From Takakia lepidozioides (Eukaryota > Plantae > Bryophyta): DNA of 64,000 nucleotides. Numbering within the stretch: the stretch's first letter is position 1; each line of letters begins with the position of its first letter. The stretch covers positions 1,612,001-1,676,000 of the forward strand of contig CM060732.1 of assembly GCA_030704615.1 (NCBI GenBank), read 5' to 3'. The notes below the pieces were generated by a model, which was not told the DNA's origin, searched no databases, and saw only the letters and a list, made by a program, of their open reading frames with translations. The position numbers and the translations under genes are program-made. Below, in pieces: positions 6,744-38,349 of this stretch.

Positions 6744-7186
6744 TGAAAATCACGTGTTGTGAGTTTCTCTATTTTTCTTCACCAAGTGAAGAACCACAGG
6801 TGCAGGAATGGGAACAATGGGATGGCTAATATATGCACTCTTGTTCAATGCACACTGTCGATCATTTTTTGTCTTCTATCACAGAATATATCTGTGTTTG
6901 CTCAAAGCATATCTCGAGAAAAAGTAAGTGCTCCCTGCATCAAGCACTCCGCAGTAAACTGATGTTCCCTGCATGGGCACAGCGACTTTCTGCACGGGGA
7001 TTCTAACCTTAAACCTTTTGTCATTTTCACCTTGCCCCGCTGCAGCACTCCTCGAAGAGAGAGAAAAGTCAGAAGCAGTGAGGGGGTAAAATGTGAGTTG
7101 TAGAGCAGTGGTTGCTGCTCCCCTCACATGAGTGAAGGATGTTCAGCATAGGAAAACCCAGAAGGGCCTGTGACCTTTTTAGCATA

Positions 7187-8770: not shown

Positions 8771-9146
8771 CAACGACACGTTAGTTCCGAAAATTTTGCT
8801 ACTTATGAACATGAAGCGGCTTCCGCTACGTGATGCTCCAGCCTCCTGGAGCAGCTCACACGTGTAGTCGTCTACCTTGCAAAGTCTTGGCGACCACTGC
8901 CTCCACCAAGCAGTTGATAGAGTCTTCGGAAAGCTCCATGGTCGTCGTTGTCATGTTCAACTGTCGGGGTTTCGGGCACTTTTTGGCCATGTGCAATTAA
9001 AGCACACCCCATCAAAGGTCGCCTTCTGCCCGCTATGTGCCATCGCACCTATTTTTCCTTTCGGAGCACCGGGTGCCGCCCTGGCATGCGAAGGCCCTCC
9101 CTTTGATCTCCAATTGTCATTGCCGTCGTATGGCTTATCCCAACAG

Positions 9147-11604
9147 GTCTAGGAGTCATACAAGATGAAACGAAATTCATCCGATTGGACAACGGATGGT
9201 TGGCCATCTGAATGATTTTTGTTTCCTTTCAAACTTTGCCAGTATGTTCGGTACGCCGTCTCACAGGTCTCGTACGAGTATGACATCAATCGAAATTTGT
9301 TAAATGGCCCAACGGACGGTTGCCCATCCAGATGAGTTTGGTTTGCTTTCAGACTTTGCCAGTATATTCAACATACCATAAGACGGGTTCCAGTGTAATA
9401 TGAGATGAAACGAAATTTGTTTGATGGGCCGACGGATGGATGCCCATCCAAATGATTTTGGTTCGCTTCGAAACTTCCGCAACGTCTTCAGTATACTGTC
9501 TCACAGATCCCTGAGTAATATAAGATGAAATGACATTCGTTCAATGGGCCAATGGCGCGTTCACCTATCATGAAATTTCGCTCATTGCGAAAAAGAATGG
9601 CGGTCGAATGGTTGACCATCCAAATGATTTTTGTTTGCTTTCAAACTTTGTTACTATGTTCAACATACCATGTATCAGGTCCCGGACTAATATGAGATGA
9701 AACAAAATTCATTTGATGGCTGAACAGATGGTTGCCCATCCAAATGATTTTGTTTCGCTTTTAGACTTTGCCAGTGTGTTCAATGTACCATCTAAGAGGT
9801 CCCAGAGTAATATGAGATGAAACGAAATTCGTCCAATGGGCCAACGGAGGGTTGCCCATCCAAATGATTTTCGTTCGTTTCGAAACTTGGCCAGTATGTC
9901 CAATGTACCATCTGACAGGTCCCAGAGTAATATGAGATCAATCGAAATTTGTTCAATGGGCCAATGAGGCGTTCACGTGTCATTCAATTTTGTTCATTGC
10001 GATAAAGAAATCCCCTCGTGGGTGAACGGGTAATGCACCCATTGAACGGATGAAGTTGAAGCCCATCTTTTGCCCGCGTGTGCTTGAATATGTGTGCAAC
10101 ACATGTGCGGAAAAACAAGAGAAGCAACAAACATTTGCCTCCCCAACCACGCCATCGTCTTTCCACCAATTTGTAATTAAATTGAGTTTAAATAAATTTC
10201 AAGCAAATAAATAGGTTTACATTGTCTTTGATTAGGGTTTTCTGCTACGTAACAAATTTTTTTTTGGCTCAATCTTGTTCTCAGGCTTCAACCCTCCCAC
10301 CGCCACATCCCTGCAAAACTTTGGACTAAACAAAAATGATTTTTTTTTTAAATTGTTCTCTTCGCTCACTATTGCTGAACTCTCTATGAAGAGTGCATGA
10401 AGTAGAAGACGAATCAAGTTTGGAATGCAAATTAGGGAAGAAACAATGGTTTTAGGTCATAATGACTTTTGTTCGCTATGAAATTTGGCACGCACGTTGC
10501 ATATGTCGTCATTAGACATATGGTTAAAAAATGGAATGAAAAAAAAATCATGTGCACCCGGCGCCGTCCAACAGGTCCCAAAGTAATAGCACATCAAACG
10601 GAATTCATCCAACAGTTGAACGGATGGTTGCCCATCCAAATCATTTTTGTTTGTTTTCAAACTTTGTCAGTACACCTTTTCACAGGTCCCGGACTAATAT
10701 GAGATGAAACGAAATTCATTTGATGGCTGAACAGATGGTTGCCCATCCAAATGATTTTGGTTCGTTTTCAGACTTTGTCAGTGTGCTCAATGTACCATGT
10801 AAGAAGTCCCAGAGTAATATGAGATGAAACGAAATTCGTCCAATGGGCCAACAGATCGTTGCACATCCAAATGATTTTCGTTCGCTTCGAGACTTGGCCA
10901 GTATGTCCAATGTACCATCTGACAGGTCCCAGAGTAATATGAAATCAATCGAAAGTCATTCAATGGGCCAATGAGGCATTCATGTGTCATCCAATTTTGT
11001 TCATTGCGAAAATAAAATCCTGTCATGGATGAACGGCCAATGCACCCATTGAACGGATGAGGTTGAGGCCCATTTATTGCCCACATGTGCTTGAATATGT
11101 ATGCAACACATGTGCGGAGAACCAATAGAAGAAACAAACATTTGTCTTCCCAACCACGCCCTCGTCCTTCCACCAATTTACAATTAAATTGAGTTTAAAT
11201 GAATTTCAAAGCAAATAAATAGGTTTACATTGTCTTTGATTGGGGTTTTCTACTGCGTAACGATTTTATTTTGCTCAATCTTATTCTCTGGCTTCTACCT
11301 TCCCACTGCTACATCCCTACAAAATTTTGGACCAAACAAAAATGATTTTTTTTTAAAGTATTCACTTGGCTCAGTATTGCAGAACTCTTTATGAAGAGTG
11401 CATGAAGTAAAAGACAAATCAAGTTCGAAGTGCAAATTAGGGAATAAACTATGGTTTTGGGTCCTAATAACTTTTGTTCGCTATGAAATTTGGCACGCAC
11501 GTTGCATATGTCGTCATTAGACACATGGTTCAAAAACGGAATGATAAAAAAATCATGTGCACACAAAAACCCGTCCAACAGGACCAGAGTAATAGCACAT
11601 CAAA
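9147..11604 (+). repeat. 120-bp satellite with ~1-kb higher-order unit
   Basis: GTCCC(A/G)GA(G/C)TAATATGAGAT recurs at 9679, 9799 and 9919; ~600-bp spacer repeated at ~9965 and ~10975. Confidence 0.9.
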
Positions 11605-12570
11605 CCCGGTTATCAGTGTCACGTCCGTCCGTCAGCGTCAGGTCACTTCAAACCTGACGCTGACGGGACCTCCGTCACTTCAGGTTCGGGGAATATTCAG
11701 GTAAAAATAGTACCAGGTAAAATATTGCCACTTAAGCAGCCACGTCGCCGACACGGTTGCGGTGGGAAATACATTTTGAAAATTAACAAAATGAACACGA
11801 CCGCCAATTCGCTTTGTTTTTCGAAATGAAAAAAGAAATAGGGACCTCCGTATTGGCGGTCATTCATTTTTTTTTTAAAAAGCAAGATTGGCGGACGCAC
11901 TAGAGGTCGCTTTTTTTTTCGAAATAGAAAAAGAAATAGCGACCGCCATATTGGCGGTCGCTTCAATTTTATTTTTTTAAAGCAAGATTGGCGGTCGTAG
12001 TGGCGGTCGCTTTATTTTTTGAATTAAAAAAAGAAATAGCGACCGCTATCTTGGCGGTCGCTTCAATTTATTATTATTTTTAAACAAGATCGGCGGTCGC
12101 ATTGGCGGTCCCCTAATTTAAAAAAGAAAACCAGTGACTGCCGTATTGGCGGTCGCACAATTTTGTAAATATGTACAGAACAAGCGACCGCCATTGGGCG
12201 GTCGCTTAATTTAAGGAATATATAGAAAAACAAACGACCGCCATCAAATATAAAGATTAAAAGCGACCGCCTTACTAGCAGTCGCGTTTTTCTTAAAATA
12301 TTAAAAATAAAAGCGACCACCATATTGGCGGTCGCTTTATTTTAAATATATTAACAAATGAAGCGACCGCCATACCGGCAGTCGCATTATATTTTGAAAT
12401 AAAAAACAATAGCGACCGCCATACGGGCAGTCGCTTAAATTTAAAAATATACAAAATAGAAGTGACAGCAATATTGCACAAAATGAAAGGAAATAAAAGC
12501 GACCGTAGTAGTGGCGGTCGCTTGTTTTTCATATTAAAAAAAAATAGCGACCGTAGTATAGCGGTCGCTT
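11605..12570 (+). mobile_element. hAT-like R terminus and subterminal arrays of the nested transposase-bearing copy
   Basis: CCCGGTTATCAG preceded by ACATCAAA (11597-11604), then a TGACG/CGTCA cluster and a palindrome array. Confidence 0.9.
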
Positions 12571-13003
12571 AATTTCAAATTTACAACAAATATGGTTGTA
12601 CAGCTTTTTTCGGGTGGGCGCTATTGGTTCGTCATTTATTCATTTCACTTTCATTTCACTTTCATCCCTCTTGGATCATATATAAGGGAGGAGGGTCACC
12701 AAGTTCCTCACTTCTTTTGGCGCAAACACTTGAGGTTGCTTTGGATGTTCTTTTCCATTGAATGAGAGTGTAGCCCAAGAGGAGGGTGCGCACCTTTTGC
12801 CGTTGTGGCTTCCATCAAAGCCACTTCAGCAAATTGTGTATAAGCTCAACACTACAACCCACATCGACCCACTTGGGTTGCTGACAGGTGTAGAAGTGTT
12901 GGGCTATCGCATTGCACTCTACATTCACAACACGTTCATTTATAGGTGACTGTTTTTTGTTGCTTGCATCGCTAGGTCCCAGGGGAGTGGATATTGGGTG
13001 AAG

Positions 13004-15282
13004 ATGAGGGAGGAATGGAGCCCTTGGTATACGACAATCCCGAACACTGTCAGTGCCACTGGTAGTGTTGAGTGCAACCTATGTGGATTAAAAAATTTTA
13101 TCGTAAGGATCGGTTGCTCGCTCACCTCGGCTATAAAGGTGTAAAGAGCGCTGGGGTGGGTTTATGCCCCAAAGCATCTATGCGGGTAAAAAGCCACTTT
13201 ACCCAGTGTGGAGGCAATATTCCAATGTCTTTGGATCTGGACATGACCTCTGAGCATAACACTTCATCTTCCCGTCAGGATGCCCCGATTAGTATCCAGG
13301 GCGACTCTTGTGAGGCTTCGGGTGTCCTTGGACAAGTGGGTTGTGCCAGAGCAACACCTGCTACAACACCTCTTTGTACCCCTACACTTCAACGGAGTAG
13401 AGGATTACAGCAGCAATCCATGCAAGAAGGTCTTAACTTGTGTGTGAAAAGACAGTTGGATAAAAAATGGGCGCAGTTTTTCTTCGAGGGCAACATCCAT
13501 TTAATGTGGCAAGGCTTCCGGCATTTGTTTTTGCCGTTAGAGCAACCTCGGAGTCCAGATCCACGTACGTGCCTCCGACTTATCACAATCTCCGCACATG
13601 ATTGCTAGAAGACGTCATGACCGAGCTTACCCAAAAGGTCAACGATAGGACGAGCGAGTGCATCAGAAAATATAGAAGCACTATATGTGCCGATGGTTGG
13701 AGTTCTGTCACAAACAGACCGTTGTTCAATGTCATGCTCGTATGTCCAGCTGGGGAACAATTCTTGGGATCGATCGACACTAGCGGCGAGAAGAAAGATG
13801 GATATTATCAATGCCAACTATTGACGGACTTCATCGAACAGGTCGGAAGTGATAGAATCGTGCAAATATGCACAGACAATGCCGCTAACATGAGAAACAC
13901 TGCAGACATGTTGTTGGCACGTTATCCTCAATGTACTATCAAGTTGTGCTGTCATATCCTTGACCTTCTTTTGGAGATGGGGGAAAGACAGAGGTGAAAA
14001 CTGATGAAACAACTTGTCAAGCGAGCGAAGACTGTTGTGTCGTTCATCCATACACACCACATTCATTTGGCAATATATAGGAGGCACGAACCCAAATGCA
14101 GCCTCCGCAAATCCTCGAATAGACTTGCATTATGCGCGGGCTTTGCTCAATCTATTCTTGCTCGACAATACCATGCTCCGAGACGACGCTGATGCCAAGG
14201 CCGGCCTCGTGCGAGTGCTCATGCGACTGGCTCCGCCGAACCATGCAGAGAGAGCTATATCCGAGTACCAATGCTTTTCAGATCGCCGCGACCCTTTTGA
14301 GGACATGCCGGATCCAAAAGAGCTCAATATGCTGCCACATGAATGGTGGGATCTGATTGGAGCTGGAGCAAGAATATTGGCTCTCATTTCTCTCTCTCCA
14401 ATATTTATTTCTCTTTGAAATGGATGAATTTCGGCGCCGAAATTCGTCTGAACCCGACACTTGAGAGAATCATCTGCCTCCGATAGTGAAGATGGATCCG
14501 ATGATGCTCCCGAAAATGCGTATGACCCGTTTACATTCACAGAGGAGGATGCTTATATCCAGCCGATCTTTGATAACCTTCTTGAAGAAGTGCGTATCGC
14601 AGATGAAGGTGAAGCTGCAATTGTGTCATCCCTAGAACATGGTCCTCAAAATGAAGTTGGGATCGACCCTCGGCCCCCACTACACGCTGAAGCCACCGGT
14701 AGTGCCTCAATGGAGCTTAGGGGTGATGTACTGCCAGGACCGATCGACGTACGCAACCCTGTTCATACAAACGATGGTGTCGAATCCATTATACAGTCGA
14801 CGGGACGGGATCATGCCTCACCGATATGACCAGCTCCACCACAATGCCAAAACCAATCCAGCTCCCCATCAACACAGCGGGCATTAAGGAGCAACAGGGT
14901 TGATCTGTTTTCCACACGCATGTATCATTCTGCTGCATTTGACCGGGCGGAAGTTGAAGCATCGGATGATGACAACCTGCCACTACAATTCCACCTTAAC
15001 CGACGTGTTGCACATCAGACCCGTGGTTCCTCACATGCCGGACTATGTAATGCCGATCCATCTCGGGCAGTCCCCCCTCCGGTACCTCCTTCGAGACCAC
15101 CTTCGATTGCGTCCCAAGTCCATAAACGACAGAGAACAGTCCAACCTTTTGTAGGCGATCGGCCCACAAACAGGCCAGATACCGTGGATGGTATTCAAGA
15201 CCGGAGCAGGAGTCGACCTCAGAGAGAACTAGGTTCGAGGTCGCTTGCAGATTCAAAGGCCTGGACATATGAGGTCGGATAG
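13004..15282 (+). pseudogene. hAT (DUF659-type) transposase, disrupted
   Basis: BED-like ECNLC...RLLAHLG...C; WAQFFFE; TICADGWS; VQICTDNAANM; CHILDLLLE; EWWDLIG; frameshifts and an internal deletion at ~14114. Confidence 0.9.
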
Positions 15283-15669
15283 GGAGGACGATTCCAGCAC
15301 TAATCATGGCAACGGTGGTGAAGTCGAGGGTGACCCGGATTTTCAACCCATCGGAGCATTAGGATTAGGATCTTCTTCGTCCCGCCGTCGAAGCAGTAGA
15401 AGGAATTGAAGCAAAATAGTTGTAGGCATGCATCAGCACTTTTTAGTGGACATGTTTATATTTCTGTACTGAAGTAATACCAATGTGATCATTGTCACTA
15501 TGAGTATTTGTATTATTGTTGTGTATGTGTTGGAAAATAAAAGATGTTGCCCATGTGTATACCAGCCAAAATGTCGGCCAAAGGCCCCGTCACTTGCTCA
15601 TGTTTGTGTTCGGTGATTTGCTTGTGGAATGGAGAAAAATTGTGCCATGCTTCCAACTGTGCATTCATT

Positions 15670-17007
15670 TTTATTTAAATGGAGCAACCGCCAAGGTGGC
15701 GGTCGCTTCTACGAGGTCTGCCCTCCGCGTGGGAGCGAGGAATGAGGAGGGGGGGGGGCATATAAGCTCCCAGTCATTATTTTGGAAATGAAGCGACCGC
15801 CAGTACTGGCGGTCGTTTTTTTGTTTTTTTTTGTTGGAAATGGAGCGACCGCCATTTATGGCGGTCGCTTATATTTTAATTGTTTTGAAAATGAAAATGG
15901 AGAGACCGCCAAGGTGGCGGTTGCTTCTACGAAGTGTGCCCCGCGCATGGAGCGAGGAGTGAGGCGGGGGGAAGGGGGGCATATAAGCTCCGGGACAATC
16001 TCCCCTCACTTCGCTTGAAGTTCTTTTTTGTTTTTATAAATGCAGCGGCCGCCATTACTGGCGGTCGTTTTTTTTTTTTTTTTGGCGATTTGGAGCGACC
16101 GCCATTTGTGGCGGTCGTTTTTTTTTTTTTAAAAAATAGAGCGACCGCCATGGTGGCGGTTGCTTCTACGAGGTCTGCTCTGCGTGAGCGAGGAATGAGG
16201 GGGGGCGGGGGCATATAAGCCCTCAATCATTCTCCCCTCACTTCCATTACTGGCAGTTTTTGTTTTTACAAAATGCAGTGACCGCCATTTCTGGCGGTTG
16301 CTGTAATGGTTATTTTTTAAGATGCAGCGACCGCCATTACAGGCGGTCGCTTTTATTTTAATTATTTTTGAAATGAAGCGACCGCCTATGTTTGCGGTCG
16401 CTTATTTATTTTAAATGTTTCTTAAATGAAGCGACCACCTATGTTGGCGGTCGCTTATTTATTTTAAATGTTTTGAAAATGAAGCGACCGCCTTTGCTGG
16501 CGGTCGCTTATTTTTTTTAAAGTTTTTTTAAATGAAGCGACCGCCTATGTTGGCGGTCGCATTTTTTGTTTTAAAGTTTTTGAAAATGAAGCAACCGCCT
16601 ATGTTGGCGGTCGCTTATTTATTTTAAAGTTTTTGAAAATGAAGCAACCACCTATGTTGGCGGTCGCTTATTTATTTTAAATGTTTCGAAAATGAACCGA
16701 CCGCCAATGCTGGCGGTCACTTATTTTTTTAATTTTTTTAAAAATGAAGCGATCGCCTATGTTGGCGGTCGCTTATTTATTTTAAATTTTTTGAAAATGA
16801 ACCGACCGCCTATGTTGGCGGTCGCTTACTTATTTTAAATGTTTTGAAAATGAAGCGACCGCCTATGCTGGCGGTCGCTTATTTGTTTTAAATGTTTTTT
16901 TAATGAAGCGACCGCATATGTTGGCGGTCGCTTATTTATTTTAAAGTTTTTGAAAATTAAGCGTTTTAATTTTTTTTTAAATGAAGCGACCGCCTATGTT
17001 GTTGGTC

Positions 17008-17042
<35 letters not shown>

Positions 17043-17215
17043 CCCGAAAAATGGAGCGACCGCCAGTTTTGCCAGTCGCTTATTTTTTTACTATCCGGAA
17101 AATCGAGCGACCGCCAAGTTGGCGGTCGCTTCTAGAAGATTCGCCCTGCACGTGGCCCGAGAAATGAAGGCGGGAGGGGATATAAGCCAAGGGAGGCTTA
17201 TTCTCCTCACTTCCT
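15670..17215 (+). repeat. Internal palindrome array (~53-bp units) with four repeated G-rich/TATAAG modules
   Basis: ATGAAGCGACCGCCTATGTTGGCGGTCGC tandem units at 16370-16930; modules at ~15680, 15900, 16140 and 17105. Confidence 0.85.
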
Positions 17216-17570
17216 CTCCACACAACTTCTGTGTGCGTGACATTTCATTATTCCACGACACGTAGTCACGTGGAGAAGGAGGCCATTGGTTGGGTGGGGG
17301 GTATTTTTTGCCGCGATTTCTGTGAGGTCGTTGCAGAATGCTCCCATAGGCCCTCATCTGGCTTCCAGGATCATTTTATTCTACAAAATTAGCTTTTAGG
17401 AACTATTTTCACACCTACTCAAACCTACTTAACGGGGGAAGGGTTTAGAGTTACGTCTTTTTAGAAAACCTCGTTTAGTGTTGCTCCGATTGTTGTAGAA
17501 TGGCAGAGGGCCAGGACGATGACCGTCATGGAAGAGATGACCCCAATGAACATGGACCGCCCCCTAAGAT

Positions 17571-18260
17571 TTGGAGTACATCCCGGACACGTTCGGAATA
17601 CAACCGGCTGCAACGTTAGAGGAACAACTAGCGGAAAGAGACCAGCGAATCAGGACCCTGCAGGACCGACTAGACTGGCAAACACTGCGCATAGCCGAAT
17701 TGGAAGCTAGATTGCAAGACATGCCTCCAAACAATGAAGGCACTGTTGTCCATAATGAGGTTCGAACAAACGTTGTGGACATAGACGCGGAGTTTGCGAT
17801 GCCCGATTGCAGTATTGACCTCATCATTCAGGAAGTTACGGACGTCCTTGACCCTGTGGCCGATAAAACCATGGTTGAGGAACAACAAATTGCGTATGAG
17901 AGAAGGAGGAAAAGAAAAGAACCAGTACTGGAAACCGGGGAATGCTCGAGGGTCGCCATTCAATCGGAGATGAACCCGATATTAGATGTCGACCGCGTTA
18001 CAAATGAGCGGGACATTGCCATGACAACTACATGGCGCTTGTCCAAAACGCTGGAGATTCAGGCATGGGTCCCATTGAATAGCGATTGGGAGAATTGGGT
18101 ACAATGGGCGACCCATTTGGCCTCCAGAGAAGCACGGGTAGAGCGGGCACTGTCAGGCTTGCAACGTGTCGCACGCATATCGAACCGTAGCGTTGATAGC
18201 ATTTATGCCAACATGCAAAGGTATAACGATCTCCGCATCGCATCAAGCATGTTCCACTAG
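17571..18260 (+). CDS. Unknown coiled-coil protein (ORF X), truncated by a CACTA insertion; likely original ATG at 17500 in another frame
   Basis: 229-aa ORF with a heptad segment and RRRKRK; diverged homolog at 45640-45970; the stop codon lies inside the CACTAG terminus. Confidence 0.6.
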   Translation: MEYIPDTFGIQPAATLEEQLAERDQRIRTLQDRLDWQTLRIAELEARLQDMPPNNEGTVVHNEVRTNVVDIDAEFAMPDCSIDLIIQEVTDVLDPVADKTMVEEQQIAYERRRKRKEPVLETGECSRVAIQSEMNPILDVDRVTNERDIAMTTTWRLSKTLEIQAWVPLNSDWENWVQWATHLASREARVERALSGLQRVARISNRSVDSIYANMQRYNDLRIASSMFH

Positions 18261-19350
18261 AAGCATTCGTGTCATTAACCACTGGGGTAACGACTCATTT
18301 TGAGTCGTAAAAGTCAAAAAATGGGATCGACTGGAAGTTACAAACGACTAGTTACAACAGACGTGGTAGTTGGGTTGGACATCCAATGATTGGAGTGGTA
18401 AAGGACACAGACGCGCGAACAACTGCTCAGCGATTAATGCGATTAATGCTGAAGAACCACGTGGCGTAACCAGGCCGGCCGCCCGTGTGTCTTTCTTTTT
18501 GGGCTGACTTTGACTTCTCCCTCCGGATGAGTGGACTGACTCACCCGGGGCGCGGTGACACATGGACACGGACGTGGATGCGGACGTGGACGCCGATGTG
18601 GCGGCACCGCGACGAGCGGCAATGCTGCCGCGTGGCCACGGGCCCAAGACGCCACATCGCAGTCGGCCACAAACTTGGAGTGCTGCATGTCACGTGGCAA
18701 CAGCGACTGACAAAGTCGACCACACAACTGCCGGCAGACGAATCCACGGGGACCACGTGGAGAGTGTGTGGGTCAACGCGTGGCGTCTTCCCCATGCAAT
18801 GGCAGTGAGGGGTACGACTGCTAGTGGAAAGACACAGAGTGCTTGTGCCCTCTCGGGACTGCTTTGGCCACTACAGTAGGAAAGCACTGCAATCGAGCAC
18901 TTGTAGTGGTTTGTGTGAGTTGTCCAAATGACCTGCATTCTAAGCTGAAAGTATGGCTCTGATGCATTCTAGTGGTTTTAGTGGTTCACCCATATGCAGG
19001 GGGAATTGAGAAGCAATGATACTGGGCGAGACTCAGAACACAGACCACAATGCATGCACAACATCACGCTAATGAACCAAATAGACGTAGTCCAGGGAGA
19101 CCAAAGACCATCACACATACACATAGAAGGTGGACGGACACGATGACAAGTCAGGGTTATGAGATATTACATTCAAATAAGAGACCGTCACGGCACACCT
19201 GCGTATGAGCAAGACAAAATGCCAACATACATGGTTGCCGGACATCACATAAACTGTCATGGCCCAAATGTTCAAAACTGGTAACGTGAGTATCATACAC
19301 ACTTCTATGAGTATCATTACACACCCAACAGGGACTACAAACATGAAATC

Positions 19351-19620
19351 TCACTTGATACTTTCACCTTTCCTCATACTCTTCTCCTGCCACAGAGTCA
19401 CCGTGCCTTTTACGTGCGCTAGTGTGGTCTGGGGGGGGGCATCGTCCACATTTGGGCAAGGCAATGTAACACTTGGAAGCATGATCTCGTGGACTTTCAC
19501 CTTGTACCACCCGGAACGAATGTCCTTGCAATGGAACTTGTCAACCCCGGCTATTCCCACCACTTCCGCCTTTGCGGCGGCTGTCTTTGACCGCTTGTCA
19601 TTGGGGTTCAGGAGAAACAC
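19351..19620 (-). CDS. CACTA TnpA C-terminal-like segment (Transposase_23/DUF8039-like)
   Basis: FHCKDIRSGWYKVKV...LPCP...TLAHVKGTVTLW pattern recognised by eye. Confidence 0.6.
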   Translation of the reverse strand: MFLLNPNDKRSKTAAAKAEVVGIAGVDKFHCKDIRSGWYKVKVHEIMLPSVTLPCPNVDDAPPQTTLAHVKGTVTLWQEKSMRKGESIK

Positions 19621-19983
19621 AGGATCTGATATCTGCAGACACCAACATCAGGGTCCACTCAGCAACAAACATAGCAATGACAGGGTGAAAGTCAAGCACA
19701 GCTGGGCATTGAAACGATCTTGGTTGCCACGATACTGAATCAACAGCAAATTTATGGTGTACCAACGTACCTTGAAGCGAGGCTCGTCGTTGAGGGTGGC
19801 AACTGAGGAAAGCTGCCCACGTGTCTTCAACTGCAGCAGCAAAAAGAGGTTTAGTCAGACGGATAAGAATAACATGAACTCTGGTGGCTGCAATGGTATA
19901 AACACACCTCCACGGAGCAAGAAACCAACCAAGTAAGTTTGCGGAGAGGGGCTGGGAACAACCATACCTTGGGCGCTGCCTCC

Positions 19984-20958
19984 TCATGCCGGGGGGCAGA
20001 TCCGGAATGTTGGCGCCGTAGCACTATGGTCCTTGGCGCAGGACCCACCTTCTTCACATTCGACCCCAGTGCCACTCCTTGTGGTCCCTACAAAACATAT
20101 AGTGCCAGCCTTGCGTGAGAGGGCATCCGGGGGGAACAAAACAAACATCTCTTTTGGCTTCGATGTCATGTTGCAAACAGTAAGGTTAGTTTCACCTGCA
20201 TGGGCGCAGAAGCACTTCCCCCAACGACCCCATCCTCTCCCACATTCAAGCTGCCAGTCGGGGTCAACTTCCGCGTGCTTGTGAAGACACACACATCCTT
20301 GGAGCAAAACAAATCTTGGCAGTAGGGCCAGACTGTTTCTAAAAGGTAGTTGAATCGGGCCCCTCACTGACATTGCTCGTGACATCAAACGACAATGGAT
20401 GGACCCATGTTCAAAAGGGGAGTTCCCCCTCCCCTTGTGTGGTGAATCATCCACTAAGAGGGTGTTGGATTCGTTAAATCCAGAAAATTGTGACCACACC
20501 CTCGACAGTCTCTTCTGTAAGTTCTGTACGGCAGGCCCTTTTGTGGGGTGTGGCTCTGTCAAGGGGTCACACTCCTCTTGTGACCACACAAAGAGGGGAG
20601 AACCCTTGACCCCCTGCATCACCACTTTCAAGATGTCTGCAACATTCCCCTTGGAAGCACAGGACCATATCCCAACGTAGAAATACCGGAAGAGAAGGTT
20701 TAAAAACTCGCAGACCTGGGGCCTTGGGAAAACATACTTGTTGGTGGTCAACACCCTTGGCCAATGACGCCTCGGGTTGGGCTGAAAGTTAGGAATAGAG
20801 TGGCACAGGATCCCGTTCAGGTCTAGAACAATTAGTTTCGACTTTTCAATGCAAGGAGCTTTTGAAGGGGTGTCACGGGGTCTCACCTCAGTGGGTTGGG
20901 AGACAACAGTCACCCCGGAGGGCAAAGTTTCGGTCCCCCTGCAGCCTGGACCGGGCAA
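19984..20958 (-). CDS. FCP1/NIF-like HAD phosphatase domain (core ~20400-20850)
   Basis: LIVLDLNGIL, RPQVCEFL, VGIWS, LFVWSQEEC, KRLSRVW, NTLLVDDSPHK. Confidence 0.85.
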   Translation of the reverse strand: MPGPGCRGTETLPSGVTVVSQPTEVRPRDTPSKAPCIEKSKLIVLDLNGILCHSIPNFQPNPRRHWPRVLTTNKYVFPRPQVCEFLNLLFRYFYVGIWSCASKGNVADILKVVMQGVKGSPLFVWSQEECDPLTEPHPTKGPAVQNLQKRLSRVWSQFSGFNESNTLLVDDSPHKGRGNSPFEHGSIHCRLMSRAMSVRGPIQLPFRNSLALLPRFVLLQGCVCLHKHAEVDPDWQLECGRGWGRWGKCFCAHAGETNLTVCNMTSKPKEMFVLFPPDALSRKAGTICFVGTTRSGTGVECEEGGSCAKDHSATAPTFRICPPA

Positions 20959-21746
20959 ACTACCACCCTCTCCCCCTACAGCTTCCCCTTTTCCCCCATC
21001 ATCAGCAATGACCCCCCATCGTCCATGTCATCCCCACCAACTTGCTGGACCTCTCCCTCTTCAACGAGTGGACCCTGCCCCCCACTGTGAATATCATCAA
21101 CAACAGGCTGGACCTCGGTCACATCCCTACCCACTACAATTACTTCCTCTTTGTCAGGTACAAGGCAGCAGGGGGGTCTTCTATAATGCCACCCGTCACA
21201 CCCCCTTTTTGCCCCATCATAAGTTCCACTATCTTCTTTAGTTGTGCTTCCATTCCCCTCTCCCGCTCCGTAGAGAGAGCCGCAAGCCTCTCCAGGGCCC
21301 CGATGCGGGCTGGCATTGAGTTCCCCGCTCCCTACGCATACAAACACCCACCCGTACTGTTAAAAACCAGAAGAAGAGGCCGAATGTGCAGGATTTCAGG
21401 CATTCGGAGATGGCTGGGTTTGGCATAACACCCCTCGTGTACCATGCATGGGGGCCCCACATACCCACCAAATCTTAGTACAACAACAGATTCATGAATG
21501 GAAACCGGACTTCAAAACAAACCTGGCTCAAAACAGACTCTGATGGGGTGCTAGTCGCAACGTTCTTTTGCTCCGCCCCGAGCTCGGACAGTGACGGGCT
21601 CCGCGCTTTGCGTCTTTTCTGTATTTGCCCATCCACACACTTTCAGTACAAAATGCCAGGAGCATATGGACAAAGCACTGCCCTGCATATCACATAACAA
21701 CTAATTCTGCACAAGGAATAAAACCCACTCGTGGGTGTCTCTTCCA

Positions 21747-22202
21747 TCACAACATGCCACAACGTAAGAGCAATGAGAAGGGGGTGTGGGAGATTACCAA
21801 ACGGGCTGCTTGGCCTGCAACTCCTGCCCGGCCCCAACGCGAGGGGTTCGTGACACAAGCACGCGCTTGCTTCATCCCTTCGGCCTTTGCAAGTCCACGA
21901 GGGGACTCCCAGTAGGCAACAAGCTTATCCCAATAGGCGGGTTCAGTGTTCATTGGCCTCACACCAGTCTTCGCCCATTTATCTTTCAGTTTTGCTCTTT
22001 CTCCTTTCATTATCTTCCCACATTGCTTGACTATAAAATCACGATTGGCAGGGATAGGTGTGTACTCGTACATTCCATTTATGCCCTCTATTACTGTTGA
22101 CATGGTACTTCGTAGCCAACATTGATGACTCCATTTCCATGCACCTCCACCTTGTGGCGCTTTAGCCCTGCAGCCACCCTTCCCTCTCCATCTCCTTCCC
22201 AT
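21747..22202 (-). CDS. Ptta/En/Spm TnpA-like exon (Transposase_24-like)
   Basis: RPMNTEPAYWDKLVAYWESP...KQAR...SRWGRAG motif; GT/AG intron-like flanks. Confidence 0.7.
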   Translation of the reverse strand: MGRRWRGKGGCRAKAPQGGGAWKWSHQCWLRSTMSTVIEGINGMYEYTPIPANRDFIVKQCGKIMKGERAKLKDKWAKTGVRPMNTEPAYWDKLVAYWESPRGLAKAEGMKQARACVTNPSRWGRAGVAGQAARLVISHTPFSLLLRCGML

Positions 22203-23099
22203 TGTTTCATGGCATGGCGTTGTTCCTTCCTCAGCTCTGATGACCGTTTCCTGCCCCCATGCTCTGGAGCAACGCCGTCATACGTTGTGGGGGGTGACTG
22301 ATGTGTGCCGGAGGGGGGAGGGCCATATGGAGATGTGGGAGGCCTCCATTGTGACGTGCCAGCATCAGGAAGCCTGCGCCACGACCCCGAAGCAGGGGGG
22401 GCTCCCCATGGTGCACTCTGTTGTGGAGACCATCCAGTAGGGGGTGGGTGCCAAGGTTGGTGTTGGTTGGCATTGTATGGTGGCTGTGAGTGCTTTGCTG
22501 CAGCTTCACTCCCCTTCCGCTGCCAAAAACATCCCACACACAAGGTGCATCAGCTGTAGTCCTACTGAATACAACGTCACCAGAGCACAAACCATCCCAC
22601 AACCACAACCATAAACAGCAGACCTCAAACCCACTCTCCTGCAGCGTAAGTGCCAAAAAATGAAAAGGAGAGGGACAAAATGTCCTCATAATATGTAAGG
22701 CCATTCATTGGTGAAGAAGCAAAATGTGGGCGGGTTCACATCAGTACCACATGAAACTTACCAGGAAACAGAACATCCATCCGGGTTTCCCACATATCTA
22801 GTGGACATCTATTCACACAATCATGTGCTGGCTGTATGTGCTTGCCCAGCAACGGAGCCCCAAAAGGCCTAAAACTCTCAATGTTGGTAAACACAGGTGC
22901 AGACACAATTCAATTGATAGCTTGGATATCCGGTGGTCTGTCTGGTGATAGCACCCCGGGCAGTGAATCAGACAATGAATATTGTGTTTGTGGAGCCCAC
23001 AGAACGGGCAATAGCACTCTCTCATCCCTCTCAGCTTCTGTTTGCTGTCCAAAGGTAGGCTTCCTCACCAAATCCACAATTTCAGTCTGGTGCACACAG

Positions 23100-24107
23100 T
23101 GGGTAGACCCTTCAGGTCATCCAGGATGTCCTCCCCCATGTCACAATCTAGAAACAGGTTCATGGATGTTTAATGCCTAACTTCTTTGTCATTACACAAT
23201 TTTGTGGCAGCACACATGGCTTTGGACACTACAGTCTCTAAGTCACATGGTTCCAGCAAGGTCAAGACTTGACGGCCCACATTCAGATCCTTGAGAGTCT
23301 CGTCTAGTCTCTTCTGGCAGGACTTGGCCTGTTTGGCTGGGCGGTCCTATTTCCAAGATATAGAGTCGATTAACTTACGATATCTGGTGTAAAGACATGT
23401 GTTGCAATAGACTCCACCATCTCACCAGCTATTCCCACCACTTCCGGTTAAGGAAGGGATGCCAAACTCACCATGAACAGCCACATTGGTTATTTTGGAG
23501 CATGCGGACATCCACTCCTTAAGCACCCCCACTTGGAAGGATACTGCAGACCTAGCCTTGTTGGAGTTATCAACGCATATAGCAAATGCGTACTCCAACG
23601 CAGGTGCAATGACGTGACAAAGCAACATTTCCTTGACCTTAGAATTAGTCCCTCTGCACACAGTGGTAGACCCTTCGGTTTTTCCACGATGTCCTCCCCC
23701 ATGTCACAGATTGAAAACATGTTCAGGGATGTTTTCTGCCTAACTTCATTTTCATTACACATTTTCTCTGGTAGCACTCACTTCCGTGGACACTACAGTC
23801 TCTAAGTTGCATTTATCCAACAGGATGAAGATGTGCGGGTCCACATTCAGATCCTTGAGAGTCAATTGTACTGTCTTCTGCTAAGACTTGGCCTGTTTGG
23901 CTCGACGGTTCTGTTTCCAAGATATAGAGTCGATTAACCTACGATCTCTGGTGTGAAGACATGTGTTGCAACAGACTCCACCATCTCACCTTCAATTAAT
24001 CTCCGCAAGAGCTTAAGGAAGGGATGCCACACCCACCCCAAACAGCCACATTGGCTGTTTTGGAGCATGCGGACATCCATTCCTTAAGCACCCCCACTTG
24101 GAAGGAT
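23100..24107. repeat. Diverged ~560-bp tandem duplication inside the CACTA element
   Basis: GGTAGACCCTTC at ~23102 and ~23664; CCAAGATATAGAGTCGATTAAC at ~23353 and ~23917. Confidence 0.8.
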
Positions 24108-24275
24108 TCTTAAGGGCGGTATCGCCCCCTGCCGCCGAGGATATTTGAAGTCAAGTACCCGGCCGCTGGGGGGGGCTTGGGCCAAGGAACGGCCATTGTT
24201 ATTAGATCTCGAGAATTACCTAGAGGTTTGAATTGTTATCATTCACCCGATGGACTGACCATTGAGGTTGCATTT
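24108..24275 (+). repeat. LTR-B fragment in opposite orientation
   Basis: Reverse complement of ~2566-2732. Confidence 0.9.
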
Positions 24276-27200
24276 TGTTATTGGAATCCACAAGGACAGG
24301 CCTTGGGATGCGGGGCACATAACGTGCAGTAATCTAACCCACCTTGTAGAATTAGAATCCGTCTGATATGGCATAAGCTATGAAAGCTATTACCATCCAA
24401 TTGCCAAGTAGAAGACTTCATACATCTTTGTTACTAATCACGTGGTGTGAGTTTCTTTTCTTCTTCACCAAGTGGAGAACCACAGGTGCAGGAATGAGAA
24501 CAATGGGTTGGCTAATATATGCACTCTTGTTCAATGCACACTGTCGATCATCATTTGTTTTTTTTATCACAGAGTCTATCTGTGTCTGCTCAAAGCATAT
24601 CTCGAGAAAAAATCAATGCTTGCTGTATCAAGCATTCTGCAGTATACTGATGCTTCCTGCATGGAGCACAACGACTTCCCGCACGGGGATTCTTAACCTT
24701 AAACCTTTTGTTATTTTCACCTTACCCCGCTGCAGCATTCCTCGTAGAAAGAGAAAAGTCAGAAGCGGTGAGGGGGTAAAAGGTGACTTGTAGAGCAGTG
24801 GTTGCTGCTCCCCTCACATGAGTGAAGGGCGTCAGGCATAGGAAAACCCAGAAGGGCCTGTGACCTTTTCAGATAGAATGTTACATTGTTCCAGAGTATG
24901 GTCATCTGAGGTGCAGAATGGATCCAATCGTTTCTTAGGTCAAGAATTTCATCACGAGCTCTGCGAAATCCATGAGAGGTCCCTGCGAGTCATAAATCAA
25001 GTTAGATTGTAGTTAGGAATGGTGCGTTTATTTCATGGGTAGGGTCCTCGGGTATCCAATCTTTTCTGTTGTTGTGGGAGCCAAGAATTGGGACTCCCAT
25101 AAGCATCTTGTTTAGGAGCTTCTAGACCCTTCCGGATTCGAGTCGAGGTCGTAGTTCGCAGTGATCAATTTATCACGGGCTGTGCACATCCATGAGAGGT
25201 CCCTGCAAGCCATGTCAAGTAGGGTAGAACCAAAGTCATTCCAAGGCTATTTTAGAGTAGAATTATCAATTTGCACCGCGCATATCTCTCTTACATCATC
25301 TAGGGGATTCGAACCCAGTCCGGTGGGGGAGAATGGCGGTTTTAGAGTATTTTTTGGCTGGGAACTCCAACTCTCTCCGGAGATGGCGAGCTGGGTGGTT
25401 TTGAAACATTTTTTTGGCTTTTGCTTTTTATTTCCTCCTCTCTCCCGGAAGACTCGAACTCTCTCCGAGGAGGAAGAGCCTGAGGGGAATTAGTCTTATC
25501 TTTACTCAAGGGAGTCGTTGACTCCAAGGGATATCAGGGATACCCTAGTAGGGGGATTTTTACGAACCAGAGATCCTGGATTCTCTTACACTCAGGACGA
25601 GTGTTCCCCATTGGTCGCCATATATGTAGATGCATATATTGGTACACTTTTCTTTTCAGATCATTTTTTATCATAAGACAAGCGGTTTCGGCATTGTACT
25701 GCCAAAACAGGTTAGTTTGTTAGTTGTCTGGAAATCGTTGGTAAAGCACGTAGGAAATTAGACAGTGTTTGCGACGACCATGGAGTGGAACTCTGGCGTT
25801 AAGATGACCGTAGGAAGCTGCATCGACAACATATTAGACTGCCAATTCGGTACCAGAAACGGCGAGTTAATCCTGTTCAAACAATACAGGACGACTGTTC
25901 AAGTCCCAGATTGCGATCTCTCTTTTTTCCCACCTTTCAAGTCCAGTAGGAACACACGGCGAGGAGCTTGGCAATTGGTGGAAGCGACATGTATAGCGAT
26001 GAAATATCGCAACAAAGCAATTGGCCGCATCGGAATGACAGCAGGTCAGGGCGACTTCAACGGCAAAGCGTGGACTTGTTAGTGGTGCGGGACAACTGGA
26101 GGGGACTCCAGACAACCTATGACTCAGTGGCAGGGTCAAAGACCCCAGAGCCATCACCAGGGATTTGATTTCCAAATATACCACAAAATATGTGTGTAGC
26201 GAAAATACGACGAATGGCGAGAAGCGCAACTTTTTACCAACGATGGAGATGAGAATTTACAGGCTGATACGGGGTATACAATTGTAGTTTGTCACCCAGT
26301 TTGGTTATTTATGGAGCTGATTAGCAGCGGGGCCAAATTATTGAGTCGACGGCACTCACAAGGCCTATTATTTGCATTTCTACTTCTTGGATAGATGAAA
26401 AATCCTGGAATTCGCCTTGAGGAGCTGGATGGATGAAATGACAACTCGTGCCAACTGGTCATCCAATTGGATGGATGAAAAGACAACTTTCATTTGCCTC
26501 TAAGACTTTTCATCCATATGGAATAGTATATTATAGATCCTTCTAGGAAATAATAGTTTAATAAATATTTTCCCTTAAACTATTAGGCACAACAACAGTA
26601 TAAAAGAGGGGGCAAGGCTTCTATTATTCTCATCTAGCTCATTTGCTTAGTTTCCTCTTGCTTGTTGTTGTAGTGCTTGCTAGCTTTTGGCTTGAGGAGG
26701 GGCTAGATCCTAGGGAGTGGAGCTTGAAGCTCCCTAGTTAGGTAGGATTCTTGTAAGCTAAGGCAAGTGGCCTAGCTTGTGGGCCTTTGAGCCATTTTCA
26801 TTTGTGAAGGAAGAGGGCAATTTCATGTGGAGGAAAGTGACTCGAGGACGAGTAGAAGGGGCTGGTATGGACTTATGGACGAGAGCCCAAGTGAAGGCCG
26901 CATAGAGTACCATTACTTGAGTTGATAGAGCATCCCAAGCACTCTCGCATAGAAAGGTTGATCCCATCTTACCATTTCACCATTTGTGTATGTGATTCAT
27001 TTATTTTCCAAGCAAAGCTTGAAGTTGAAAATCTGATTTAGACTCTTCAAAAGAAGAGAGTGCATTGTGGAGTCCCATTATTTCATGTCTAGAAGTGACA
27101 AGGGGGGAGACCCCCATAGTCTATTGGTAAGGGCACCAATAGAGGCTTGTATTTGAATTGTTGGAAGAATGAATCTTTGTATTTGATTACTAATTTGAAA

Positions 27201-27466
27201 TATAGCCAGCTCTGGCAAAGCAGGCCAGTAGGTTGGATCTATGATATAAGGCCACTATAAGGCCTCTATGTGCTAATCCCCCCCCCCCCCCACTAGCAAG
27301 CCATGGAGGCCTAGGGGAGGGTGGATTGTATTCTTTTTGTCTTGGGGTTTGGGCGGGCTAATTTCGCTTGACAGCAGCTACCCCAAAGTCGCGAGCCGCC
27401 CGAGAGAAGCCCGGGTGCTGCGCCTAGAGAGTAAGGACTCGATTACTAAAAGCGTGGAGGCAGCCG
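24276..27466 (+). mobile_element. Family A gypsy 3' region; possible PPT and LTR start at 27066
   Basis: Reverse complement of 1-2015; AAAAGAAGAGAG then TGTGGAGTCCC, resembling the LTR-B start TGTGAAGCCCC. Confidence 0.65.
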
Positions 27467-27816
27467 TGGGACCTGTCAGATGGTACATTCGACATACTGG
27501 CCAAGTCTCGAAGCGAACGAAAATCATTTGGATGGGCCATCATCCGTTGGCCCATTGGACGAATTTCGTTTCATCTCATATTACTCTGGGACCTCTTAGA
27601 TGGTACATTGAGCACACTGGCAAAGTCTGAAAGCGGACCAAAATCGTTTGGATGGGCAACCATCCGTTTGGCCATTGAATGAATTTCGATTGATCTCATA
27701 TTAGTCAAAGACCTGTGAGAGGGTGTACCGGACGTACTGGCAAAGTTTGAAAACAAACAAAAATGATTTGGATGGGCAACCATCCGTTCAACCGTTGGAT
27801 GAATTTCGTTTGATGT
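27467..27816 (-). repeat. 120-bp satellite, inverted
   Basis: Reverse complement of the unit that begins at 44076. Confidence 0.9.
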
Positions 27817-28540
27817 CCTAGTTATCATTCCTGACGTGACGTGGCGCTGACACGTCGGCCGTCACATCACGTCGAATCCGGACGTTTATCCATGTAATTT
27901 TTTTTACATTTGACTTTTACGATTTACTTCTACCCTTTGTAATGACATGGCAGCCACGTTGTAAAACAGACGTGGCCAATTATTAATATTTATTAATTCT
28001 TCTAAAAAAATGAGTCCGCCTATATTGCCGGTCGCATATAATTTATTATTTTTAATAAAAGCGACCGCCCATATTGGCGGTCGCTTGTAATTTAATATTT
28101 TGTTAAATTAAGCGACCGCCAGTATTGGCGGTCACCCGTAATTTATTTATTTTAAAATGAAGCAACCGCCCCATATTGGCGGTCGTCCGTAATTTATTTA
28201 TTTATAAATGAAGCGACCGCCCATATTGGCGGTCGCCCGTAATTTATTTATTTATAAATGAAGCGACCTCCAATATTGGCGGTCGCCCGTAATTTATTTA
28301 TTTTTAAATGAAGCGACCGCCCAAATTGGCGGTTGCCCGTAATTTATTTATTTTTAAATGAAGCGACCGCCCATATTGGCGGTCGCCCGTAATTTATTTA
28401 TTTATAAATGAAGCGACCCCCCATAGTGGCGGTCGCCCGTAATTTTTTTATTTTTAAATGAAGCGACCGCCCAAATTGACGGTCGCCCGTGATTTTTTTA
28501 TTTTTAAATGAAACGACCGCCCATATTGGCCAGTCGCACG
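27817..28540 (+). mobile_element. hAT-like L terminus with 50-bp palindrome tandem array
   Basis: CCTAGTTATCATTCC preceded by TTTGATGT (reverse complement of ACATCAAA); ATGAA every 50 bp from 28208 to 28508. Confidence 0.9.
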
Positions 28541-28976
28541 TAGCGAGGTGCGACTGGCCAGTCGCGCCGCGCTGACACGTGGCGAGGCTCCACTGGCCTG
28601 TCGCGTCTTTTCAAGCATAATGTCATTTTGGGGGGGGCGGCTGGTGGGCACCTATATAAACCATTCCCCCCTCCTTTTCTGATCACTTTTGTCCCTCTTG
28701 TGGTGCGGTTCTTTGGCATCTTGTAGTCCTTTCGGACTTCGTTGCTTGGCACTGCCAACAGGAGGTGCAAAGGTGATTATTTGGGGGGGGAGGTTTTGTT
28801 GGTTTTCTATTGGTCAGTCCCACACACTTGTTCACGGTACAATCATCATATCACCATTTTTTTTCCGCATCTCCGGCAGCCTGTTTTTTTGCAGAAAACT
28901 ACGAAGACACCATCCACACGCGTTCATTGCCATTTTTCTGAGGTTTTGGACCCTGTAGTGGGCAAATGTTTATACA

Positions 28977-30373
28977 ATGTCGGGGGTTGTGAATTCAAGT
29001 TCTGGGGCGGGATCGTCTGGGGGGCAGAGGAAGAGAAAATGTGCCCACGAGCGGGATAGCCAGGTCAACAAGCCAGACTACCCGGGACCGGATGCCTCGG
29101 ATAGGGTGAAAGAAGTGGTAACGGATTATTTCAAGGGTAGGGACATGATGAGGCTGGAAAGTGCTTATGTTAGGTATGGATAGGAAGGGTTTCAGATTTT
29201 TCAGCAAAATATGGAGAGGAAAATGACAAACGCTTTGGCGGGGGCTAAGTGGACGACGGACAGGGACAAGCCGAAGTTCAATCGGTGGATCCAAAGCAGG
29301 GCGAAAGACGCCACGTGGAATTTGGGGCAGCTAATGAAGACATGGAAGGGTAGAACAACCGAGGGTCGAGTGCCCTCCGCCGAAGCTGAGTTAATGCGGC
29401 GTGTTGAGTATTGGGCTTGTCCGGCAAGTCAGAATTCACATCGCCGGACTAGGGTTGTCCCTTGGAAGGCGGGGTCATCGGGCGGGGGAGGCACAACTGG
29501 TCTTTATTACCTGAACTCTACTGCGAAGGTGGTAGAGATTGGCCCTTACAAAGAAAGAGGGTATGCTAAGGTCCGTCACTGTAGGATTGTTGGCGATTCT
29601 AGAATATCGGAGCGTTGGGAGCTAGCGGGAAAAAAACCCAAGTCCAAAAATCCAGAAAAGGCTTTGAGACAATATAACGACGAGTGTTTGGCAGTGAAGT
29701 TCCAGCATCCGGGTGTTATCTCATATTTTGCTGTGAATGCATGTGAGGTAGATGGTTACACTCGCTGGTGGAATGGGGGGACAATACGCGACATGATGAA
29801 CCTTGACAGAAAATGGGGCAACGATTCGGACAACAGGGTGATTTTGGAACAAAGAGGAACGGAAGCAGAGTTCCAGGAATGCGATCGCGTCCTCAAGAAC
29901 GGTGTCCTGCACAACGACTTGTCCCCCGACAACATCTTGTTGCATTTTCCAGATGACACCGAGGAGATCAAGATTGGGGTGTGTGATTGGGGCTTAGCCA
30001 CCCCATTGGGCATATGCAAAGCCTCGCCGTACCAGTTTGAAAACCAAGACAAGCTGGACCGGGAACTCGCGAAAAGATGGTGGGTGGGAAAAAGATATTG
30101 CATCGGTTTTCAATGCGAATGTCACGCCCCCCCTAGGACATGACGTCGGAGGCCTTTGCCGTTGGGAAGATAGCGGTACGAATAAATGGCGGCGCTCATT
30201 ATGATCAAAGTATGTTCCAGGACCAATTTACGGGAGGTTGTTGGCATTCAATGCTACAAAGGTTGTACGACAACAACAAGAATGAGAGAGTCACATTAGC
30301 CCATGTAGTACTTCGGTTCATGGGCAAGCCATTCAATTGGCCTGAGCCGAAAGACGTATATAGGACGGAGTAG
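28977..30373 (+). pseudogene. Atypical protein kinase gene with N-terminal extension, disrupted
   Basis: Subdomains in order: RGYAKV, LAGKK, NDE, HPGVI, NGGTI, VLHNDLSPDNILL, CDWGLA, SEAFAVG, ERVT; split over three ORFs; TATATAAA at ~28653. Confidence 0.8.
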
Positions 30374-32024
30374 ACCATAGTCTCGTAGATATGAGATTTC
30401 TGGCGGTACAATGGTTCTTTTATGAAGACATAACTCAATTTTGATCGAGCATGTAATAAATAAAGTCTCATTGTATATACTACATTGCATATGCTCGACC
30501 CTGGCACCTGTCATCGCAACATAAATGGTTTGTGTACTGGCTCACTGTTTATATCTGTAATGTTCCAAGGTTTTGGATAGGGTTATGAGAAAACGATGTA
30601 TTAGTTCCGTAGGAGTTAGACAACAGACGTATCCTCTCATTCAACTGTGCGACACTACCATGAGAGGCATGGATCGGAAAGTAATAGGTGCACATGCGAC
30701 CTCCGAACGTTTGATACTAGGTTTCTACTTAAACGTGCGGAGGTCGCATGTACACCTATTACTTTTTTATCCATGCCACTCATGGTAATATCGCACACTT
30801 GAATGAGATATGGAACGTTTGTTGTCTAACTCATATGGATCCAATATATCATTTTCTCAGTACCCTGTCAGAAACATTGAAACATTCGCAGTTAAAACCA
30901 GTGCCACAATACACGGCCGATTTTGTTGAAATGACATTTGTGAGGTTCAAGCGTATGCAATTTTTTATTTACAACGGAATTTTATTTATCGAGGGACCGG
31001 TACTGCTGTTGGAGCGCAACTGATGGTGCGAGTTCTCTATTGATTGGAGCTGTCACAACCAATGTCAACAATCATATTTACGGTAAGGTGTTTCATGCTA
31101 TTGTTGTTCTTCTAGCTGAATTCTGTAATACTCTTTTTGCTATTCCCATGCCAACGTCCTCTGAGACTGTCATGTTCAAACAGACGTATCAGCCACCCCG
31201 GCCAGCTTGCAGGCTGCAACCATGGCCCACCATAAATTGAATGAATTGGAGATTTTGTGCGAAGTTCCTGGTTTCATGTCCGTGGTGGCTGATACGGAAT
31301 TCGGAATATGGCAATCGCAGTGGACCTGATGTTGTTGGCATGGGAGTAGCAAAACGATTCCTAAATAATTCTGCTACATGAACATCGGCAGTATGAAACA
31401 CCTTGCAGTACATATGATTCTTGAGATTGTTTGCACGGATTATTTGTGTTTGTGCTTTCAAGTGACGAACATTTCCGCCATGGTGCGGAAGACGTGTATT
31501 GGCCACATTAAACGGTTGATGTGGTACCATTTCACAAATGTATCACATCGCATTTGTGAAAATGTATCACATGAACCGTTCCATGTGGCCTACGGGAGTC
31601 TTTGATGGGTACGAGATCTGCTTCCACCAACAAACATGTGATCATTTCAGAAGCGCTAGAACTTTGAAGCGACGATGGGCAAGGTTCTTCATCCAGATGT
31701 TCAACATGTTGAGGTCTTATATAACCTCTTGCTTCGTAATGACGTGCTTCTCCAACTATTATTTTTCCAATGCTAATATTTTCCATCTGGAACATATCCA
31801 CACATGCGTATATAAGTTAAAAAAAGAAATGACCATCAAAACTGGAAGTTGGGGATGAGGCTTATAAAAGTTGAGATGGTCATTTGTTTTTTTAAGGATT
31901 TATGCACACATATGTGGATCTGTTCCAGGTGGAGAATATTAACATATTGGATAAAGTGGACATGGAGAAGCACCGCATTACGAGGCAGGAGACACTACAA
32001 AAAAAGCTTCAAAGGGCATACCTG

Positions 32025-38250: not shown

Positions 38251-38349
38251 ACAACGACACGTTAGTTCCGAAAATTTTGCTACTTATGAACATGAAGCGG
38301 CTTCCGCTACGTAATGCTTCAGCCTCTTGGAGCAGCTCACATGTGTAGT

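Follow-up and report, generated by a model that had tools for sequence, protein, structure and literature searches.

Can a plant transposon of the hAT superfamily, which typically follows a plan with a single transposase gene, as in Ac, carry a protein kinase gene of its own? This question was raised by a 64,000-nt stretch of the Takakia lepidozioides genome (GCA_030704615.1, contig CM060732.1, positions 1,612,001 to 1,676,000 of the forward strand; hereafter the window, with positions counted from its first nucleotide). A first, sequence-only reading had proposed that 11597–30373 form one hAT-like element with a transposase at one end and an atypical kinase at the other, linked by a target-site duplication (TSD) split across an inversion. 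We found that the locus is best explained, with a probability of roughly 0.6, as the debris of one large multi-gene hAT family in which the kinase would be a selected accessory gene. The single-transposase-gene plan did not apply, because the window holds a kinase, a third open reading frame (ORF) and hairpins, and a complete relative on a metagenome contig (L003) holds a RING gene and a kinase.

The R ends, the L end, their flanks and the empty sites that had been described were all present. R ends with the sequence CCCGGTTATCA were located at 11605 and 40974, each directly 3′ of ACATCAAA. The L end, CCTAGTTATCA at 27817, was preceded by TTTGATGT, the reverse complement of ACATCAAA, and by the reverse-complemented satellite continuation (27467–27816, minus strand), which terminates in the target site (27809–27816). 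The 8-bp target site ACATCAAA at the left junction of the nested insertion occupied 11597–11604 (plus strand), and intact, empty copies of it were found at 10591, 44076 and 45051. The R terminus (11605–11800, plus strand), with an 11-bp terminal inverted repeat (TIR) and GACG-rich subterminal repeats, was 91% identical to the R end at 46646, and the L terminus (27817–27980, plus strand), with a TIR and subterminal repeats, was 94.5% identical to the L end at 36324. A motif scan for the terminal pattern together with GACG-rich subterminal DNA gave exactly six termini in the 64 kb, at 6423 (minus), 11605, 27817, 36324, 40974 and 46646 (minus). Chance matches in an integrase gene were considered for the ends at 6413 and 36324 and rejected; both are genuine termini. 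The TIRs of the family were 11 bp long with 9 of the 11 positions matching, and 6–9 GACG/CGTC motifs followed within the first 120–130 bp, as in hAT elements.

The R end at 11605 led into a broken and internally deleted transposase of the DUF659 type (copy A, 13000–15400, plus strand), with a DUF659 match at 13602–13994 (E 1e-24). The nested R end and transposase were duplicated at 40966–43914 (copy B, plus strand), where the copy ends at 43914. The window transposase was 43% identical to the transposase of L003 over 355 aa and carried the DGW, CTDN and CAAH motifs of a hAT-type DDE transposase with its CxxH. The C-terminal part, where the dimerisation domain and the catalytic Glu would be expected, was cut off in both window copies; the dimerisation domain, PF05699, was found in L003. 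An exact 8-bp TSD, ATGGAGAA, stood on both sides of a complete relative at 36324–46646, as expected for hAT insertions, and a common terminus at three different sites in Ceratodon purpureus would fit cut-and-paste mobility, if only indirectly. Judged by its TSD, TIRs and transposase, the family is hAT. Mutator elements are recognized by a MULE transposase, long TIRs and a 9-bp TSD, and none of these was seen in a family with a DUF659 transposase, an 11-bp TIR and an 8-bp TSD.

Inward of the L end at 27817, a palindrome array (27988–28545, with a 50-bp period at 28016–28542), a TATA box near 28652 and an intronless protein-kinase pseudogene (28977–30373, plus strand; ATG at 28977, stop at 30373) were all present, as the sequence-only reading had stated. 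Three lesions break the kinase: codon 69 is a premature stop, approximately 20 codons are deleted near 29880, and the reading frame shifts near 30100–30135. The window copy of the element is dead. A search returned 110 homologs, some of them from Ceratodon purpureus, and the catalytic residues K213, E232, D330, N335 and D353 were invariant in 50 of the homologs. The model of one homolog (P0002; mean predicted local distance difference test score, pLDDT, 86.5) showed an N-terminal helical domain followed by a standard kinase domain, with matches in Foldseek and VIA. The bilobed fold was complete in this model, with the Gly loop, β3 Lys, αC Glu, catalytic Asp/Asn and Mg-binding Asp. Compared with eukaryotic protein kinases (RLK/IRAK, IRE1, ULK and Tyr kinases), the predicted fold was the same and the catalytic residues were kept (best Z 19.9, in a range of about 19–20 for the best matches, with a root-mean-square deviation of 3.2 over 233 residues). 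In contrast, identity was 12–18% to all of them with no preferred family, HND replaced HRD, DWG replaced DFG, and the additional helical domain at the N terminus (about 165 residues) found no usable match in the atlas. The proposed atypical kinase is better described as a divergent member of the ordinary eukaryotic fold. Between diverged copies the ratio of nonsynonymous to synonymous substitution rates (dN/dS), a comparison that had been proposed for the kinase copies, was 0.15, 0.27 and 0.33. The invariant catalytic residues and the low dN/dS argued for an enzyme that is under selection and probably active.

The kinase was linked to related hAT-type termini in other genomes. In Ceratodon one kinase cluster comprised 126 near-identical members, and the listed ones were full-length and lay on several autosomes and on both sex chromosomes, U and V. 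Three of these copies, inserted at unrelated sites, were fetched; they share sequence from a common terminus beginning with CAGGGTTGTTC, which precedes the kinase by 1.1–1.2 kb. The spacing from L end to kinase in the window was 1.16 kb. The sequence-only reading had asked whether kinase homologs always lie inward of an L end, and in five loci (L001, L002, L004, L016 and L017) the kinase was the first gene inside a related terminus. The L003 contig contained a complete element of 14.3 kb (1852–16119) with TIRs and a TSD matching at 7 of 8 positions, in which a RING gene and the kinase were accompanied by a convergent 979-aa transposase with DUF659 and the dimerisation domain. The gene order was the same in L007. 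Within 10 kb of the kinase, eight of nine independent loci contained a RING gene or else a paralogue of that gene's N-terminal domain. Together, these loci bore out the proposal of a large hAT element with a kinase inward of the L end and convergent with the transposase, without recourse to the split TSD. The MuDR-style layout of two genes was correct in having a convergent accessory gene but oversimplified, since the relatives add a RING gene and the window copy adds a third ORF, hairpins and a satellite. A literature search of incomplete coverage found no kinase- or RING-bearing hAT element, in keeping with the suggestion that such a family may be undescribed. On the basis of linkage in other genomes and purifying selection at the sequence level, the kinase was shown to be a long-kept accessory gene of the lineage and not a passenger.

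Two other associations of the kinase were tried and rejected. In L001 the kinase appeared also to ride a non-hAT DUF7869 element, but a hAT-type terminus at 9265 lay between DUF7869 and the kinase. A NIF phosphatase as family cargo paired with the kinase was rejected in the window, where it sits inside a CACTA insertion that begins at 18255; in L003 and L004, where NIF genes also lie close to the kinase, they were beyond the identified termini or at their edge. A fragment of a Tet-like 2OG-Fe(II) oxygenase (PF20515), possibly further epigenetic cargo, came immediately after the kinase in L004 (11436–11741) and L014 (11606–11889). A second, RING-less gene sharing the N-terminal domain of the RING gene was seen in L002, L006, L008, L004 and L015.

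The relative at 36324–46646, overlooked by the sequence-only reading, is a complete non-autonomous copy within a gypsy integrase gene and hosts the nested insertion. When the integrase flanks on its two sides were translated separately, they ended and began with the same residues. From one end to the other it contained an L end, palindromes, a zinc-knuckle fragment, a 120-bp satellite, a remnant of the third ORF, palindromes and an R end, with neither a kinase nor a transposase of its own, and it looks like a deletion derivative. Other L ends without the kinase had been named as grounds for doubting the family, and the L end at 36324 is formally such a case; however, the transposase is also missing there, as would suit a deletion derivative. 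The 120-bp satellite also followed the kinase, where it formed, with a spacer, the internal satellite of the element (32017–32876, plus strand) and was cut by a rearrangement breakpoint at 32877. Because the complete relative contains it, the satellite is internal to the family, and the kinase-side element therefore inserted into the satellite of a relative. The window thus adds a family nested in its own internal satellite, with a matched complete deletion derivative. Three partial copies overlapped: R end, transposase and third ORF (11605–18254); R end, third-ORF remnant, satellite and L end (46646–36324); and L end, kinase, hairpins and satellite (27817–32876). From these a convergent multi-gene element can be inferred without reliance on the split TSD. 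At the place of the kinase in the complete copy, a minus-strand CCHC zinc-knuckle fragment was present at 38251–38620 and again at 8770–9135. Direct repeats that were 95% identical (2070–3072 and 53260–54265) lay on either side of the whole nest and are probably the long terminal repeats (LTRs) of a gypsy element with gag-pol at 46647–51900 (minus strand).

Ahead of each gene in the window lay a TATA-like box and an array of one and the same palindrome, GCGACCGCC-N4-6-GGCGGTCGC. Besides the array before the kinase, one lay before the transposase (11809–12570, with a TATA box near 12680) and one, with TATA-like boxes, at 15680–17130. The latter preceded the third ORF of the family, which encodes a coiled coil (17502–18254, plus strand), is cut at 18255 and may possibly be part of the RING-H2 accessory gene of the lineage; a whole-library search with it gave only repeat and coiled-coil artefacts. 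The N-terminal domain of the RING gene had no match in the PDB (best Z 3.2) and a weak likeness in the atlas to plant transposon domains of the Transposase_32 type (template modelling score 0.42–0.46), while feature searches of the atlas gave no matches.

Four long single-stem hairpins followed the kinase, at 30635–30808 (H1), 31050–31440 (H2), 31495–31595 (H3) and 31726–31991 (H4). They were unrelated to each other, and their z scores of -9.5 to -18.8 and minimal folding free energy indices of -1.0 to -1.3 agreed with the long, low-energy stems of plant microRNA precursors. In H3, both arms encoded a motif of the RING-gene N-terminal domain (11.6 bits; the best of 295 shuffled sequences scored 3.2), and RING genes of mosses agreed with it at 17 of 18 bases; by these matches, the hairpin is a fold-back of accessory-gene (RING) coding sequence. 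For H1, H2 and H4 there was no source or target in the window or the fetched loci, and all matches in an Rfam scan of the hairpin region were far below the gathering score. In L003 a tandem fold-back array with units of about 100 bp (8029–8365, z -11.5), not homologous to the window hairpins, lay between the RING gene and the kinase.

Several observations weigh against a multi-gene hAT family with a selected kinase. The recent Ceratodon copies of the kinase gave dN/dS values of 0.45–0.73, on few changes. As no transposase was found within the 10 kb fetched around the Ceratodon copies, the terminus is what identifies them as hAT. The transposase tree itself favours the family, since it placed the window sequence in one clade with those of L003 and Ceratodon and separate from the DUF659 proteins of seed plants, with a support of 100/100, but the tree was midpoint-rooted, its sample was biased by the query, and rows with fewer than 250 aligned residues were left out. 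The third ORF matched the coiled coil that precedes the RING in moss RING genes by one profile (15.4 bits, E 3e-4) and not significantly by a broader one, and no RING domain or motif survives in the window. A separate question is whether the R and L junctions belong to one insertion, which we consider likely; the L-end block lies within a tangle of duplication, inversion and duplication and may be a copy of DNA that lies farther upstream, before the window begins. The regions 3985–14114 and 32877–43580 are a segmental duplicate with 92–97% identity, so the R ends at 11605 and 40974 represent one event; a small inversion at 6278–6742, private to duplicate A, has turned round the host L end along with the adjoining integrase flank. 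Of all satellite units, the one at 44076 was closest both to the sequence that flanks the R end upstream (93–94%) and to that beyond the L end (95.5%), compared with 87–93% for other units. The two junctions break at the same base, and among the 22 uninterrupted monomer sites that were matched, just 3 had the ACATCAAA variant. These observations speak against two separate insertions into like satellite units, at 27817 and 11605, that were joined by an inverted duplication from upstream of the window, with the family otherwise as described. Such an origin would agree with the L-end block adjoining DNA that duplicates 1–2733 of the window in reverse, and since the satellite units are 87–97% alike the flanks discriminate weakly; we regard it as unlikely. 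The split TSD as the two ends of one insertion was thus favoured by the shared satellite subtype, though the complex rearrangement around the L end tempers this part of the earlier proposal. Assembly errors, which the highly repetitive region and several abrupt junctions might suggest as the cause of the inversion and duplication, are hardly credible. The duplicates diverge by 3–8%, with their own indels and the private inversion, and therefore old and real events fit better; the link between kinase and terminus is in any case unaffected.

The role of the kinase can also be read in other ways. It might be a captured host gene and neutral cargo, as in Pack-type elements, and the captured zinc-knuckle fragment at the same position in the complete relative and the decay of the window copy to a pseudogene both agree with this. 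However, Pack-type cargo is fragmentary host sequence that drifts neutrally, while the kinase is a full-length, intronless gene with its own promoter array, invariant catalytic residues and a dN/dS well below 1. It occupies the same position in distant genomes, and no single-copy host parent was found among the 110 matches, which makes neutral capture very improbable. An addiction or drive module, in which one product of the kinase, RING gene and hairpins harms sibling spores or cells without the element and another protects carriers, has a precedent in the fungal Spok genes, where drive involves a kinase-like resistance domain. The long retention of the kinase under selection, the haploid-dominant hosts and a hairpin aimed at a partner gene, which suits antidote logic, would be consistent with drive. 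Yet many dispersed copies would saturate it, kinase-less derivatives such as 36324–46646 persist, and no toxin-like domain was found; we consider drive improbable.

The preferred model is thus a family in which an R end, transposase and third ORF would read inward from one side, and an L end, kinase, hairpins and satellite from the other. A kinase-bearing copy would have landed in a non-autonomous relative, within its internal satellite; this relative itself lay in a gypsy element. The ends would later have been separated by a CACTA insertion, an inversion and a roughly 10-kb duplication. The kinase would most likely work in trans with the RING protein to aid the spread of the element, and the two might phosphorylate and ubiquitylate either the transposase itself or a host factor involved in silencing or chromatin. 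Small RNAs derived from the hairpins may tune RING-type genes of their own or rival families. We propose only tentatively that seed-free land plants harbour here an ancient hAT lineage with its own signalling kit, namely an active kinase, a RING E3-like protein and accessory-gene hairpin RNAs, which would disable host silencing or police rivals. Because intact young copies exist in Ceratodon purpureus, the question of transposon versus host silencing is directly testable there.

Other elements were also noted in the window. Approximately 9 kb of the span first taken as one element (18255–27466) is foreign CACTA and LTR DNA. The CACTA-type insertion (18255–24109, minus strand) begins with CACTAGAAG and lacks its far end; it contains an FCP1/NIF-like phosphatase ORF (19987–21027, minus) and a Transposase_24-like ORF (21750–22277, minus), and its terminus recurs in reverse at 56230–56609 (92%). 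The LTR-retroelement DNA (24110–27466, minus strand) includes an inverted duplicate of 1–2733 at 24110–26300. Farther along, 54200–55800 holds a decayed PPR-like coding piece (54197–54616, minus). It also holds a segment of 480 bp that is duplicated and carries an OSB/PDF-like WWDNRGKK motif. Inverted repeats of about 260 bp (82% identical; 56612–56873 and 58641–58900) surround 1.8 kb in a MULE-like arrangement, and 59250–64000 contains retroelement-like ORFs (59566–63999, minus) bounded by 10-bp tandem arrays of the GCTGTGA type.

How does this family compare with known systems? Its 11-bp TIRs, short subterminal repeats, 8-bp TSD, hAT transposase and deletion derivatives are those of the hAT superfamily, including maize Ac/Ds and the DUF659/BED-type plant hATs (Ac features: PMC3260210). 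Ac is 4.6 kb long with a single transcript, and gene capture has been called rare in hATs (PMC3260210); the lineage described here differs in reaching about 14 kb or more and in carrying a kinase, hairpins, an internal satellite and, in most cases, a RING gene. As in MuDR, with mudrA and mudrB, an accessory gene at the opposite end is read inward, in the direction of the transposase. The MURB protein of MuDR binds MURA (PMC12973397). Here the superfamily and transposase are others, the TIRs are short, the TSD is 8 bp, and the accessory gene encodes a predicted enzyme and is accompanied by others. VANDAL (VANC) and En/Spm (TnpA) are multi-gene plant DNA transposons whose accessory proteins act via repeated non-coding motifs (PMC10398659; bioRxiv 10.64898/2026.08.24.746577), and the palindrome arrays before each gene suggest by analogy a similar logic. 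Those elements belong to the Mutator and CACTA superfamilies and use DNA-binding regulators, in contrast to the kinase and E3-like protein of this family. Rice CACTA elements, as cited in PMC12973397, carry a microRNA against OsDRM2. The predicted hairpin RNAs of the window are likewise transposon-borne, but the one that could be traced matches a transposon accessory gene and not a host methyltransferase. Among plant DNA transposons, the accessory proteins known so far, such as MURB, VANC and TnpA, belong to Mutator, CACTA and Harbinger elements, and they bind either DNA or the transposase; if the present reading is true, a hAT lineage whose kinase is maintained by selection across distant plants would extend this list to post-translational signalling. 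The family departs from the one-gene plan of Ac; in its accessory genes it recalls MuDR, VANDAL and En/Spm, without being a member of those groups.

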